Shown: positions 45,653 to 63,887 of the stretch, piece by piece | Layout of the letters: the number at the start of each line of letters is the position of its first letter | Numbering within the stretch: the stretch's first letter is position 1 | Source of the DNA: Macrostomum lignano | Taxonomy: Eukaryota | Assembly (NCBI GenBank): GCA_002269645.1 | Contig: NIVC01000070.1 | Coordinates: 806,001 to 870,000 of the forward strand | Direction: 5' to 3' | DNA: 64,000 bases | Made by a program: the position numbers and the translations under genes | The notes under the pieces: model-generated | What the model was told of the DNA's origin: nothing | Seen by the model: the letters and a program-made list of their open reading frames with translations, nothing else | Databases searched by the model: none

Positions 45653-48600
45653 TCAAATATTGTGTCCATGGCCGGCAACCTGCAGACGCAGCTGCTGCTG
45701 TCTCAGCGGCCTCGGCAGCGAAGCCTCCGACGCCATCGACTCGGCGTCGAAGTCCAGCCGACGCTCCAGAGTTTCGGTCTCTCGCGGGCGCGGCGGCGGC
45801 TGCGGGTCAATGACGGCGTCACGTTGCAGCTGCAGCTCCTCCTCGCGGATCGGCTGCAGGCCGGCCGACTGGTCGTGATTCCCGCCGACCACCCACACGT
45901 CCGGCTCGTCCCCGTTAGCCATCGCCTTCATGACGGCGTTGCTGTGCGAGAACTTCGACTGTGGCTGATGGTGAGCTACCGGGGGATCGCGACGGTACAG
46001 CCGCCTGTCCAGGGTGGCGCTGGGACTACCGGTTGAGACGCTTTCGCCCAGACCGGCAGCCGCGCTCCGTTGGATCTTCGGCTCCACGGATGAAGTCTTC
46101 TTGCTGGTCTTTGTCTTGGCCGTCTTGACCACCTTCGGCTTCGGCTCCTTGGGCGGCTTTGCCGGTTTCGGTGGCTTTGGCGGCTGATTTTTTTGCCTCT
46201 CCGCTTGGTAGGCCAGGATTTTACCGATGGCGCTGGAAATTTTGTTGCAGTGGGTTCAGAAACATTTGAGATGTGCAAGGAAACTGCCCGTGGTTTTGCT
46301 AACCCTCGTAGTGACTCAAGACGACTCCGCTCAGGGGCGAGCGGAATGAGCACAACTGCTTGCTTCCTAGCTGGCTGCAGGTGGATAAGTGGCAGGTAAA
46401 ATCGAATAGTCATGAATAGTACTCACAGCTGGGCCAGTATGATGATGCCTGCGATGCTGGCTAGGCTGCTGCTGTGGATGGCAAACACGCCAAAAAACGC
46501 TAGGAAACCCTCTGTAAAGTGTGTAATTGTAACAGGTGGATTTAAGCTTTAGCATAGCATACCTTGCTAAACAAAGTACGAGGCTATTGCATAAAAACTT
46601 TACTCACCAACTCCGGCTGAGTACTGAGGAGAGCCTGAAATTAAAAAGTAACCGTCTCAAAACACTCACTCTATTTAAGCCTATGATTGCTGAAAATACT
46701 ATCGAATAAATATGAGCTTTATAGCAACTCAATAACCGACTCACACAGGCTGATGTTGCAGTACTCAAATCTTATATTCGGATCGGTTGTGAAGCACCAC
46801 GGTCCGTTGGTGTCATTGTTAGGGTTTCTGCAGTAGTTCTCCGCCTGGGAAATGGTTACCGAGTTGAACATCTGCGGCAGGTAATAAGGATGCGGATGCG
46901 GATGCTGCGAGTCCCAGCGCTGGCAGGTGCGACCGTTGCCGGTGGTTGATCGACGGCCCGCGTACGTGAAACCGTAGATGGAGTCGATGCACTCGAATAC
47001 TGCAATTGCGGCGGGTAGGGCCTCTGTCTGTCTGTCTGTCTGTGTGTCTGTCTTAGTGTCTTAGTGTCTTAGTGTCTTAGTGTCTTAGTGTCTTAGTGTC
47101 TTGGTGTCTTAGTGTCTTAGTGTGTCTTAGTGTCTTAGTGTCTTAGTGTCTTAGTGTGTCTTAGTGTCTTAGTGTCTTAGTGTCTTAGTGTGTCTTGGTG
47201 TCTTGGTGTCTTAGTGTCTTAGTGTCTTAGTGTCTTAGTGTCTTAGTGTCTTAGTGTGTCTTAGTGTCTTAGTGTCTTAGTGTCTTAGTGTCTTAGTGTC
47301 TTAGTGTCTTAGTGTCTTAGTGTGTCTTGGTGTCTTAGTGTCTTAGTGTGTCTTAGTGTCTTAGTGTCCTAGTGTCTTAGTGTCTTAGTGTCTTAGTGTC
47401 TTGGTGTCTTAGTGTCTTAGTGTGTCTTAGTGTCTTAGTGTCCTAGTGTCTTAGTGTCCTAGTGTCTTAGTGTCTTTTTGTCTTAGTGTCTTGGTGTCTT
47501 GGTGTCTTAGTGTCTTAGTGTCTTAGTGTCTTAGTGTGTCTTAGTGTCTTAGTGTCTTAGTGTCTTAGTGTCTTAGTGTCTTAGTGTCTTAGTGTCTTAG
47601 TGTCTTAGTGTCTTAGTGTCTTAGTGTCTTAGTGTCTTAGTGTCTTAGTGTCTTAGTGTGTCTTAGTGTCTTAGTGTCTTAGTGTCTTGGTGTCTTTTTG
47701 TCTTAGTGTCTTGGTGTCTTGGTGTCTTAGTGTCTTAGTGTCTTAGTGTCTTAGTGTCTTAGTGTGTCTTAGTGTCTTAGTGTCTTAGTGTCTTAGTGTC
47801 TTAGTGTCTTAGTGTCTTAGTGTCTTAGTGTCTTAGTGTCTTGGTGTCTTAGTGTCTTAGTGTCCTGGTGTCTTGGTGTCTTAGTGTCTTAGTGTCTTAG
47901 TGTCTTAGTGTCTTTTTGTCTTAGTGTCTTAGTGTCTTAGTGTCTTAGTGTCTTAGTGTCTTAGTGTCTTAGTGTGTCTTGGTGTCTTGGTGTCTTAGTG
48001 TCTTAGTGTCATAGTGTCTTAGTGTCTTAGTGTCTTAGTGTCTTAGTGTCCTAGTGTCTTAGTGTCTTAGTGTGTCTTAGTGTCTTAGTGTCTTAGTTTC
48101 TTAGTGTCTTAGTGTCTTGGTGTCTTAGTGTCTTAGTGTCTTAGTGTCTTAGTGTCTTAGTGTCTTAGTGTCTTAGTGTCCTAGTGCCTTAGTGTCTTAG
48201 TGTCTTAGTGTCTTAGTGTCTTAGTGTCCTAGTGTCTTAGTGTCTTAGTGTCTTAGTGTCTTAGTGTCTTAGTGTCTTGGTGTCTTGGTGTCTTAGTGTC
48301 TTAGTGTCTTAGTGTCTTAGTGTGTCTTAGTGTCTTAGTGTCTTAGTGTCTTAGTGTCTTAGTGTCTTAGTGTCTTAGTGTCTTGGTGTCTTAGTGTCTT
48401 AGTGTGTCTTAGTGTCTTAGTGTCTTAGTGTCTTAGTGTGTCTTAGTGTCTTAGTGTCTTAGTGTCTTAGTGTCTTAGTGTCTTTTTGTCTTAGTGTCTT
48501 GGTGTCTTGGTGTCTTAGTGTCTTAGTGTCTTAGTGTCTTTTTGTCTTAGTGTCTTAGTGTCTTAGTGTCTTAGTGTCTTAGTGTCTTAGTGTCTTAGTG

Positions 48601-61300: not shown

Positions 61301-63887
61301 GCGTAGTATAGGCCCTGCGTGTCGGTCATGCAGACTGAAGAGCAGTTTAGCGAGGGTTTTGTTAGATTTGAGACACTGTAAATATAACTCCTTAAGGGTT
61401 ATATGACCGACTGCAAGGGTACTGCTCCAAGGGTACTGCTGGGCTAACACACACCCTAAATTACAACATAGGGGCCCACCTACTGCTGGTACCCATTTTA
61501 CAGCTGGGCGAACTGAAGCAATGCAGTGTTAAGAATCTTGCTTAAGGACACAAATTGCTCTTCGTGGGTCGAGAATCGAACCCCCGACTTATCAGTCTTG
61601 AGTCCGACGCTATAACCACTAGGCTACAACGCCTGTTATCATTATTAACAACAGACCAGTAGTCTTTAAGTAGTTAGGCTGTAATCAAAGAGTAAAAAGA
61701 CAAGTAGTTGAGTGTTTCGTAGTAATATAACAATTGTACAAGCACTGGCATACGCGTAGCTAAACAAAACGCCAAAAAGAATTGATATCGACGACAACAA
61801 GTTTACCAGTCAAGTAGCAGGGATTGGCGCAGTACTGCTTCGTCCCAGCGACCGTAGGGCACCACGGTCCGGTGATGTCGTTGTCAGGATTGCGGCAGTA
61901 ATCAGCAGCTGCGTCCAGAGTCAGATCGGGCATGACTCCCGGGTGAAACAGCGGCTGGCTAATTATCGCTGAGCTGGTGGGCGGCACCACCTTGGAGTTG
62001 TACCAGTCGGACGATCGGCTCGAGTACACGCTTGACCATCTGGCGCAGCCGCTGTACGTGATGAGATCCTTGTACCTGTAGCTGTCAGACTGAGGGCTGG
62101 GACACCCGTTGATCGGCACTGAATGAGGATGATTTGTTTTTTGGTATTGTAACAGTCGACAAAGGGAAGATGCATGTGGCTTACTTGCTAAATTTGGCTA
62201 TCTGTCTTAAGTCTTTTGGTTTTACATTCGACCATGTAAATAGTAAAAAATAATGATGTTTCAAGTAAAACTCGTAAGCTCGTTGCCTCTGTAAGGACTT
62301 GATTCGAACTCACCGCACACAGGTACAACGCACGGCTCCCAATCGGTTGTGCTCACTAGGCACCAGAGACCAACCGGGCTACTGTTGGGATTTCTGCAGT
62401 AATTGTTCGCGGCACTGATAGTCTCGCCAGACACTGGCCATGTAGCAGCTGTGTAAACACCGGGAGCTGAGTCCCACCGGATGCAGGTCTTGCCTGTGAC
62501 GGAAGTTGACTGGTTGCCACGATAACTGGAACCAAGTCGGTCTGTCCGGCAGCCTCCGGGGTTCACCTGCGAGCAGAACGGTATGCTGCAGTTGGAAGGC
62601 GTCGGAGTTCCTCCGACGTCCGTCAGGCACCAGGGCACGAAATTTATTGATGATGGATTGTTTCTGCAATGCGAAATAGATTTTGGACGCGCGTGCAGAT
62701 AAATTTACATGGGTTTTCCATTGATTACAAATATCGTGCTGATTAAACTCACAGAAGGCCTCTAGTTTTTGCTGAAAAATGCATTGGCACTATATAACTA
62801 GCACTCTCTCCTTCTCAACTCGAGCCAACTTGTGAGTTAAAATGACATAAAATTACCAAGCTATTTCCTGCAGAAACATGTGACTGAAGACGGCAAGCAA
62901 GAAAAGTTTTCACAAAATGGGGTTTCCATGTCACCAAAGTAATGTTGATGCACATTTGCTTACACATCGACCGCGATGTTGCGACAGACACTCCCGGGAA
63001 TTGTGGCATCCGCAGTGAACAAAGGAGCGTAGATGGCAGAATAGATGCTCGACCACGACAGGCACGGGCTGCCTGATGTACTCTGAGAAATGGCTCCGTT
63101 GTATTCGGTTCCAGTGACGGTCTCCCGGCAGGTTTTGGCTGGAAGAAATGTAGTGTACTTTGATTAATTGGCATGTGATTAAGTCTCTTCTTAAGCTTCA
63201 GTTTTGTCTTCAGCTGTGCAAACTTACAGCACACGGGGATGCCATCGCAGAAGTCGTAGTTTGCGGCAACTCCACACGATCCGGTGACAATGTAGCACCA
63301 GGGTCTGTCGGTGTCGGCGCCAGGGTTTCTGCATTTATTGCCAGCAGCGGCTTTGCTGCCGTCCGGGAAAGTGGAGTCCGCATACCGGGTGTTGATGGCA
63401 TCAGTCCATGGTCTGCAGGTGCATCCGCTTGTAGTGGTGCTGATGTTGCCCTTGTAGAAGAAGCCAGCTCTGTTGGCTCTGCAGTCTGACGGAATGGTCA
63501 AAGTCCTCGATAATAGTTTACACTCGTCCCGAAATACTTTAGAGAGATAGGAATGCTATTCAATGTCTTTAGATTAGTACTAAATGTACTATATTAGTAT
63601 AATTTCAATCGAAGCTACATGTATTCCAAGCATGGGATGGCGAGCGATTATTTTCAAAAATCTACATGTGCACATTTTCTCGCTACGAGGTGTAAGACTT
63701 TGAGAGAGCATCTAGTAACGAAAACTGACTTTTGAGTTAGTCCAATTCGATTCAATTTTTGTTAAAATCCGGTATTAATCTATCAAAAATCTGTTTGCTT
63801 ACCCTGTGCTGTTGCTGACTGAATTGACACTGCTAGCAATAGCAGGAAACTCGCTACACCAGTCAAAATCGACATCAAATAGTTCAT
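58389..63887 (-). CDS. Hexa-kringle single-pass membrane protein K1 (974 aa); exons 63887-63803, 63536-63228, 63138-62964, 62663-62314, 62118-61807, 61334-61038, 60279-60028, 59954-59910, 59785-59707, 59409-58389
   Basis: Signal peptide MNYLMSILTGVASFLLLLAVSIQSATA; six kringles (NKCRNPGADTDRPWC, VCRNIAVD..FVPWC, NYCRNPNSSPVGLWC, DYCRNPDNDITGPWC, NYCRTPDQNRWGPWC, NYCRNPDGSTTGPWC); TM MVILTGIIGMIGLTTGLALVGSLIAA; Gly/Ser-rich tail with PPPY. Spliced length 2925 nt is in frame. Confidence 0.87.
60430..60830 (+). mobile_element. Degenerate RTE-like LINE fragment in K1 intron 6
   Basis: RRGLA*AAF...ALFNVVVKTYNAESWTL; shares GTGGGCTTGCCTGAGCTGC with the 56.4-57.3 kb copy. Confidence 0.65.
61483..61630 (-). 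mobile_element. tRNA-derived SINE family A, 5' half, K1 intron 5
   Basis: Head GTTGTAGCCTAGTGGTTATAGCGTCGGACTC...GGTTCGATTCTC plus CORE-like segment. Confidence 0.78.

Follow-up and report, generated by a model that had tools for sequence, protein, structure and literature searches.

Two neighboring genes, which we term K1 and K2, lie head to tail on the minus strand of a stretch of 64,000 nucleotides (nt) from the flatworm Macrostomum lignano (GenBank assembly GCA_002269645.1, contig NIVC01000070.1, positions 806,001 to 870,000; hereafter the window, in whose positions all coordinates are given). We propose that they are probably the tandem duplicates of the krg1 family in this species, namely type I membrane proteins that display an array of six kringles and, by homology, are likely to act in the anchor cells of the adhesive organs. 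The proposal is drawn from sequence comparison, foremost with the characterized founding member of the family, the krg1 protein of the polyclad Theama mediterranea (Tmed-krg1). Such proteins are already known in kind and, at the transcript level, in M. lignano: earlier work has published the architecture, its likely role and a M. lignano member, and the pair opens no new question. The temporary adhesion of flatworms serves as a model of reversible gluing, in which the krg protein has been proposed as the link between animal and glue. To this, the present analysis adds: (i) the exact structures of tandem paralogues in a genetically tractable species, with their conserved exon layout; (ii) a full-length model of K2, for which public annotation has a chimeric fragment only; (iii) a residue-level caution, in that the published lysine-pocket model has to do without the canonical binding-site residues.

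Beyond Pjeta et al. 2022 (Mar Drugs 20:359, PMC9229212), our literature search found no paper on the krg1 family. In that study, Tmed-krg1 is predicted to be bound to the membrane and to expose six kringles in a row outside the cell; the in situ pattern of the gene is the same as that of an anchor-cell marker, and its knockdown renders the animals non-adhesive. It further states homologues for M. lignano and Minona ileanae, the former being the tail-specific transcript RNA815_8153 with a published anchor-cell in situ pattern, and advances a model wherein the kringles attach to lysine residues of the cohesive glue protein, a bond that is broken by a negatively charged releasing factor (PMC9229212). 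An earlier reading of the window from its letters alone (the sequence-only reading) had pointed to a link between kringle proteins and flatworm adhesive anchor cells, which this paper bears out. It had also guessed at an adhesion anchor, a guess that gains support from the homology of K1 and K2 to a protein whose knockdown abolishes adhesion in Theama. It had named an earlier description of the architecture as something that would refute it, and Pjeta et al. 2022 is such a description.

The homology extends past generic kringle resemblance. We used the deposited M. lignano protein BOX15_Mlig018513g1 (P0001, 949 amino acids, aa), to which K1 is 98% identical over its full length, as the query of an exhaustive phmmer search over 1.84 billion representative proteins. 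The third-best match is UQT06013.1, ‘kringle-like protein 1 [Theama mediterranea]’, that is, Tmed-krg1 itself (1357 aa). The two matches above it are very long proteins aligned in 18 and 11 separate stretches, and the match to Tmed-krg1 includes one stretch of 368 query residues that covers kringles 3–6. Residues 211–576 of K1 (kringles 3–6) are colinear with residues 29–408 of Tmed-krg1, with 43.8% identity over 386 aa (expectation value, E, 2.5e-81), and K2 aligns across the same colinear four-kringle block with 39% identity (E 5e-84). The identity between K1 and Tmed-krg1 is on par with that between K1 and K2, and higher than the 27–33% identity of K1 to plasminogens.

Within this block lies an atypical kringle 4 of 96–98 aa, including an insertion of about 18 residues in its second loop. 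An Asp-x-Asp motif (DND in K1, DDD in K2, DED in Tmed-krg1), along with Lys 72 and Tyr 74, is conserved in all three proteins as well as in P0079, a 330-aa UniParc fragment (with DND) that constitutes a further relative with the same block of kringles 4–6. The overall plan of Tmed-krg1 (ON323680) is likewise that of K1 and K2: a hydrophobic N-terminus, a protease-less kringle array, one transmembrane segment and a low-complexity tail, the hydrophobic segments being placed by hydropathy at residues 4–22 and 1092–1110. A Gly-rich tail is common to K1 and Tmed-krg1, and kringles 1–4 of the latter correspond to kringles 3–6 of K1. By pattern we count eight six-Cys kringle-like modules in Tmed-krg1 (residues 29–766) as against the six counted in PMC9229212; two of these modules may fall below the thresholds of domain searches. 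M. lignano has two tandem members of the family with unrelated tails.

Gene structure, second genomic copy and selection

Kringle-type motifs, scanned for as [YF]CR[NDST]P across the whole window, are confined to the minus strand between 46.7 and 63.5 kb. From this region, both genes were rebuilt from sequence and script-checked. GT-AG borders are present at 18 of the 18 introns, and the two genes have in common the intron phases 1,1,2,1,1,1,1,1,2 as well as the lengths of exon 1 (85 nt) and exon 4 (350 nt). The sequence-only reading had proposed precisely this layout of two head-to-tail genes with 10 exons each, and all of it was reproduced, coordinates included. The features are as follows.

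58389..63887, minus strand: gene K1, krg1-family paralogue 1; ATG at 63887 to stop at 58389, 10 exons, 957 aa
63803..63887, minus strand: K1 exon 1, 85 nt, ends in phase 1; MNYLMSILTGVASFLLLLAVSIQSATAQ, signal-peptide-like, hydropathy 2.37
63228..63485, minus strand: K1 exon 2, 258 nt; kringle 1, with 8 Cys
62964..63138, minus strand: K1 exon 3, 175 nt, ends in phase 2; first part of kringle 2, up to CRN
62314..62663, minus strand: K1 exon 4, 350 nt; remainder of kringle 2 and the whole of kringle 3
61807..62118, minus strand: K1 exon 5, 312 nt; atypical long kringle 4, 96 aa, CRNPDND
61038..61334, minus strand: K1 exon 6, 297 nt; kringle 5 and linker
60028..60279, minus strand: K1 exon 7, 252 nt; kringle 6
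59910..59954, minus strand: K1 exon 8, 45 nt; short Ser/Thr/Pro stalk
59707..59785, minus strand: K1 exon 9, 79 nt, ends in phase 2; predicted transmembrane segment VILTGIIGMIGLTTGLALVGSLIAA
58389..59409, minus strand: K1 exon 10, 1021 nt including the stop; predicted cytoplasmic tail, 25% Gly
55677..58388, minus strand: K1–K2 spacer, 2.7 kb, from the K1 stop to the K2 ATG
45653..55676, minus strand: gene K2, krg1-family paralogue 2; ATG at 55676 to stop at 45653, 10 exons, 804 aa
55592..55676, minus strand: K2 exon 1, 85 nt; signal-peptide-like, conserved in the second genomic copy (L001, see below)
54306..54548, minus strand: K2 exon 2, 243 nt; kringle 1
53535..53712, minus strand: K2 exon 3, 178 nt, ends in phase 2; first part of kringle 2
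51258..51607, minus strand: K2 exon 4, 350 nt; remainder of kringle 2 and kringle 3
49908..50216, minus strand: K2 exon 5, 309 nt; atypical kringle 4, CRNPDDD
48886..49188, minus strand: K2 exon 6, 303 nt; kringle 5 and linker
46745..46999, minus strand: K2 exon 7, 255 nt; kringle 6, its last Cys codon split by the intron (T|GC)
46608..46634, minus strand: K2 exon 8, 27 nt; short stalk
46427..46511, minus strand: K2 exon 9, 85 nt, ends in phase 2; hydrophobic, likely transmembrane segment that runs on into exon 10
45653..46232, minus strand: K2 exon 10, 580 nt including the stop; end of the transmembrane segment and predicted cytoplasmic tail

A kringle exon flanked by phase-1 introns is a classic exon-shuffling module, and kringles 1, 4, 5 and 6 each occupy a single exon with phase-1 introns on both sides. 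Kringle 2 is split by a phase-2 intron right after CRN, at which point both paralogues carry a 7-residue insertion. K2 spans 10.0 kb as against the 5.5 kb of K1 because satellite arrays fill its introns.

These satellites lie at 47049–48816, 50242–51153, 51735–53521 and 53944–54292, and comprise (TGTCTTAG)x216, (CTGT)x105, an 18-mer x27, an 18-mer x92 and a 14-mer x25; the introns that bear them are shorter in the second genomic copy. Within intron 5 of K1, a tRNA-like stretch (~61560–61660, minus strand) shows motifs that resemble an A-box and a B-box, and it recurs with 3 mismatches at 14333–14360 (minus strand). Neither ARAGORN nor Rfam calls it a tRNA, and it is probably a repeat of the tRNA-derived short interspersed nuclear element (SINE) type.

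Both models find support in deposited sequences. In addition to the match of K1 to P0001, the exon 5–10 junctions of K2 are matched exactly, including the split Cys codon and the exon 9/10 junction, by P0038 (UniProt A0A1I8IVL5). This is a chimeric ‘Kringle domain-containing protein’ of 1260 aa that comprises K2 exons 5–10, a frameshift near the end of exon 10 and a further ~800 aa derived from transposons and other sequence, a portion of which recurs at 30182–30610 of the window. A complete K2 model was not found in the databases, and the NCBI contig from which P0001 derives (L001, GCA_002269645.1) has no gene called for K2. This contig presents a second copy of the locus, with a K1-like gene followed 3.2 kb on by a K2-like gene. 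Every exon border of both genes is conserved therein, as are the start codon, leader and donor site (GTAAGT) of K2. A third kringle gene was found neither in the rest of the window nor in the 10 kb upstream of the L001 copy.

Comparison of the window with L001 over exons 1–9 yields a synonymous divergence (dS) of 0.082 for both genes and a ratio of nonsynonymous to synonymous divergence (omega) of 0.11 for K1 and 0.15 for K2; therefore, both genes are constrained and evolve under purifying selection. As judged from these sequences, the K1–K2 pair might either have been copied as a unit or be present as diverged haplotypes. A recent large-scale duplication is known for M. lignano, and a dS of ~0.08 between the copies fits this event or diverged haplotypes alike. 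Between the two genes, AATAAA/ATTAAA signals are found in the spacer 385–503 nt past the K1 stop. The spacer also holds an RVT_1 fragment (56944–57282, minus strand, Pfam E 1e-7) with a YADD motif, a decayed retroelement of the non-long-terminal-repeat type.

Domain content and membrane topology

Pfam recognizes six Kringle stretches in each of K1 (E 4e-67) and K2 (E 3.9e-77) and, beyond Kringle, no family in either at E <= 0.01, with Trypsin, WSC, CUB, Frizzled, Ig and kinase domains all being absent. A tblastn search of the window with the PAN and protease domains of plasminogen produced chance-level matches only (E > 1 for the protease domain). Thus, the six kringles unaccompanied by protease, PAN, CUB, WSC, Frizzled or kinase domains that the sequence-only reading had described are upheld by Pfam and, for PAN and protease, also by tblastn. 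Its signal peptide and transmembrane segment hold as predictions for K1, where hydropathy detects both, and more narrowly for K2, where the transmembrane segment is borderline. These calls were made solely by Kyte–Doolittle hydropathy with a threshold of 1.7. Both proteins start with a hydrophobic leader and have a single hydrophobic segment after kringle 6: the K1 segments are at residues 4–22 (2.37) and 593–611 (2.19), and the post-kringle segment of K2 is at residues 586–604 with a value of 1.71, barely over the threshold.

The ectodomains of K1 and K2 are 45% identical and contain 5 and 11 N-glycosylation sequons, respectively; their tails are unrelated in both sequence and composition. 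That of K1 has 339 aa, is rich in Gly, Ser and Ala (25% Gly) with a net charge near neutral, and features the motifs PPPY and YDVI and a 39-nt x3.3 repeat coding for GGGAGYTGGHSGG. That of K2 is Pro/Lys-rich and then acidic, with a net charge of +9. Tail-to-tail BLAST comparisons of K1, K2 and Tmed-krg1 recovered nothing significant, a common LPPP-DP motif being at chance level (E 2.7).

An AlphaFold2 model of P0001, computed with a 28-sequence alignment, has moderate to high confidence for kringles 1, 2, 3, 5 and 6. Fold and sequence searches of the PDB matched the kringles of plasminogen, angiostatin, hepatocyte growth factor (HGF), prothrombin, apo(a) and ROR. Neither these searches nor the model give a hint of a further hidden domain.

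These matches invite comparison with the better-known kringle systems. With plasminogen, apo(a) and HGF-MSP, K1 and K2 share tandem six-Cys kringles with a CRNP...WC core, the best structure matches being 4DUR, 1KI0 and 7MO7; they differ in having neither a PAN/apple domain nor a protease or pseudo-protease, and in being, by prediction, membrane-anchored. With Kremen1/2 and ROR1/ROR2/MuSK, the common trait is a type I membrane protein whose ectodomain includes a kringle. However, Kremen (kringle + WSC + CUB) and ROR/MuSK (with Ig, Frizzled and kinase domains) have one kringle, and Pfam detects none of these companion domains in K1 or K2. The sequence-only reading had held that membrane kringle proteins carry one kringle, a generalization at odds with database proteins in which several kringles are predicted alongside membrane spans. 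As judged purely by pattern and hydropathy heuristics, a signal peptide, several kringles and one transmembrane segment are predicted for the hemichordate Glandiceps talaboti protein XP_077981543.1 (P0178, ‘plasminogen-like’) and for the environmental P0109 and P0189, and multi-kringle proteins resembling G-protein-coupled receptors (GPCRs) are represented by P0024, P0051 and P0071. Like K1 and K2, the Glandiceps and GPCR-like proteins have protease-less kringles followed by membrane spans, but their similarity is limited to generic kringle matches, with no colinearity, and they lack the atypical kringle 4.

Proposed anchor-cell role and alternative explanations

Several observations weigh against assigning K1 and K2 to the krg1 family as membrane-anchored adhesion proteins. 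First, Tmed-krg1 starts at a kringle-3-like module and has no counterparts of kringles 1–2 of K1 and K2, while carrying four extra kringles C-terminal to the shared block. Given these differing kringle complements, K1 and K2 are here called homologues of Tmed-krg1 and not its strict one-to-one orthologues. Moreover, the Thr/Pro/Glu-rich, mucin-like stalk of Tmed-krg1 extends over ~325 aa as against 16 aa in K1 and 10 aa in K2, and the tails of the three proteins have no significant mutual similarity. Second, with respect to topology, the transmembrane call of K2 is borderline (1.71), and the AlphaFold2 predicted local distance difference test score (pLDDT) falls below 50 in kringle 4, in the transmembrane segment and in the tail, so the model is silent on both the kringle 4 pocket and the transmembrane helix. 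Third, the sequence of RNA815_8153 was not found by full-text literature search or in the supplements of PMC9229212 and Arbore 2015, and this transcript may stem from K1, from K2 or from neither; hence, the expression of each gene is inferred. The Arbore 2015 supplement does list tail-specific read counts for RNA815_8153, where the value of 1615 in the final column may denote the transcript length, and the kringle transcripts in the supplements of Wunderer 2019 are exclusively others.

Finally, the lysine-binding site speaks on the same side. We aligned the 12 kringles of K1 and K2 with the five kringles (K1–K5) of mouse plasminogen. By the roles that the plasminogen literature assigns to these positions, the canonical lysine-binding set (plasminogen K1/K4/K5 type) consists of the acidic pair Asp55 and Asp57, a positively charged residue at 71 (or 35) and aromatic side chains at 62, 64 and 72. 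In this alignment, a complete set is present in none of the 12, unlike in the plasminogens. Kringle 4, the sole keeper of the Asp-x-Asp, has Trp62 but also Pro64 and Lys72, and kringle 6 of K2 (Asn55/Asp57/Trp62/Phe64/Arg71/Phe72) departs from the set at Asp55 alone. On the experimental side, 10% free lysine or arginine hindered the release of M. lignano and not its attachment (Wunderer et al. 2019, PMC6410801). This agrees with the absence of the canonical residues and argues against a simple lysine-pocket tether, which free lysine should compete away. Taken at the residue level, binding of K1 and K2 via a classical plasminogen-type lysine pocket is unlikely. If a defined pocket is involved, kringle 4 would be the best candidate for it; otherwise, the interaction with the glue may be broader and electrostatic in nature.

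The krg1-family assignment nevertheless remains, in our view, the probable one, and by homology with Tmed-krg1 the following mechanism is the most likely. K1, K2 or both would sit on the microvilli of anchor cells in the duo-gland adhesive organs, where the kringle array would grip the cohesive glue protein Mlig-ap1, which is secreted and very basic. The tail, which we take as disordered and cytoplasmic, would hand the load to the interior of the cell. Upon release, a secreted negatively charged factor would break the contact between kringles and glue. Mlig-ap1 has Lys/Arg-rich regions of > 3,600 aa (PMC6410801), of which SRKPRRKNRKSRKP is an example peptide, and heparin blocks the attachment of M. 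lignano (Wunderer et al. 2019, PMC6410801). Anchor-cell expression, ligand and binding mode of K1 and K2 are all inferred.

A more far-reaching version of this mechanism is doubtful. It holds that the glue is not bound through classical lysine pockets at all and that the atypical kringle 4 is a new ligand site for a poly-Lys/Arg glue that is released by a polyanion, that the paralogues split the intracellular job between them, and that they provide a transmembrane link from the glue to the cytoskeleton. If it were true, the glycine-loop-like Gly/Ser/Tyr tail of K1 would tie the receptor to the intermediate-filament core, the tail of Tmed-krg1 being alike in kind; the basic-then-acidic tail of K2 would do another job; and the pair would constitute the transmembrane link in a reversible glue-to-cytoskeleton load path.

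The existence of two paralogues raises the issue of whether both serve in adhesion. It is conceivable, albeit on the unlikely side, that just one of them is the anchor-cell tether and the other acts in a different cell type or with a different partner (epidermal, gland or sensory), which would amount to subfunctionalization rather than redundancy. Such a split would fit several of the differences described above: ectodomains just 45% identical, unrelated tails (25% Gly and near-neutral in K1, Pro/Lys-rich and +9 in K2) and 11 sequons in K2 vs. 5 in K1. Further, the literature names a single M. lignano transcript, and purifying selection acts on both genes, with neither decaying. Nevertheless, the six kringles are colinear throughout, kringle 4 included, K2 is nearly as close to Tmed-krg1 (E 5e-84) and tandem duplicates often have regulatory elements in common. 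In practical terms, the presence of two paralogues means that single knockdowns may be buffered and that probes and guides must be paralogue-specific.

The domain content bears on another alternative, namely that K1 and K2 are signaling co-receptors in the manner of Kremen or ROR, with kringles that capture a ligand and a tail that recruits signaling or endocytic machinery, and are not mechanical anchors at all. The kringles of Kremen and ROR do sit in single-pass receptors, those of ROR1/ROR2 are among the solved-structure matches, and the PPPY and YDVI motifs of the K1 tail could be read in this light. We consider this improbable, given the absence of WSC, CUB, Frizzled, Ig and kinase domains from the Pfam results, the low-complexity, non-conserved tails, and the adhesion phenotype and structural-cell expression of the closest characterized relative.

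It is also quite improbable that the proteins function as soluble arrays akin to angiostatin or apo(a), generated by shedding or by skipping of exon 9, and contributing to the glue or to the secretion that releases it. In favor of this, the majority of database relatives with several kringles are secreted proteins, both stalks are short, and loss of exon 9 would be a simple means of removing the anchor; however, at 79 or 85 nt this exon is not a multiple of three, and its skipping shifts the frame. The transmembrane exon is included in both the deposited K1 model and P0038, the position of the hydrophobic exon is kept in the two paralogues and Tmed-krg1, and Tmed-krg1 is expressed in anchor cells and not in gland cells (PMC9229212). 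Least credible of all, and rejected here, is an annotation illusion, in the form of one read-through gene or a live gene beside a dead copy: the genes do lie head to tail, 2.7 kb apart, with a retroelement fragment between them, but the K1 stop recurs in the deposited protein, with polyadenylation-type hexamers downstream of it, K2 starts at an ATG of its own with a hydrophobic leader and a GTAAGT donor, all conserved in L001, and both frames are intact with omega values of 0.11 and 0.15.

Neighboring features of the window

A 23-bp tandem array (x22, 44969–45479), which begins some 170 bp past the K2 stop, gives rise to long spurious open reading frames (ORFs) on both strands. Convergent to K2 lies a large cadherin-repeat gene (36558–41048, plus strand), a second gene of cell-surface adhesion type beside the krg pair, whose 732-aa ORF contains six Cadherin stretches of the FAT4/CELSR-like kind followed by a hydrophobic segment; a 361-aa ORF upstream in the same gene adds one Cadherin stretch. 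The remaining features are all on the minus strand: an FG-GAP repeat ORF (20054–20446), a single-ORF homologue of the SART-1 family (tri-small nuclear ribonucleoprotein, tri-snRNP; 11511–13928), and the C-terminal exon of an FGGY carbohydrate kinase (6400–7135), which runs into a CTGT-type microsatellite.

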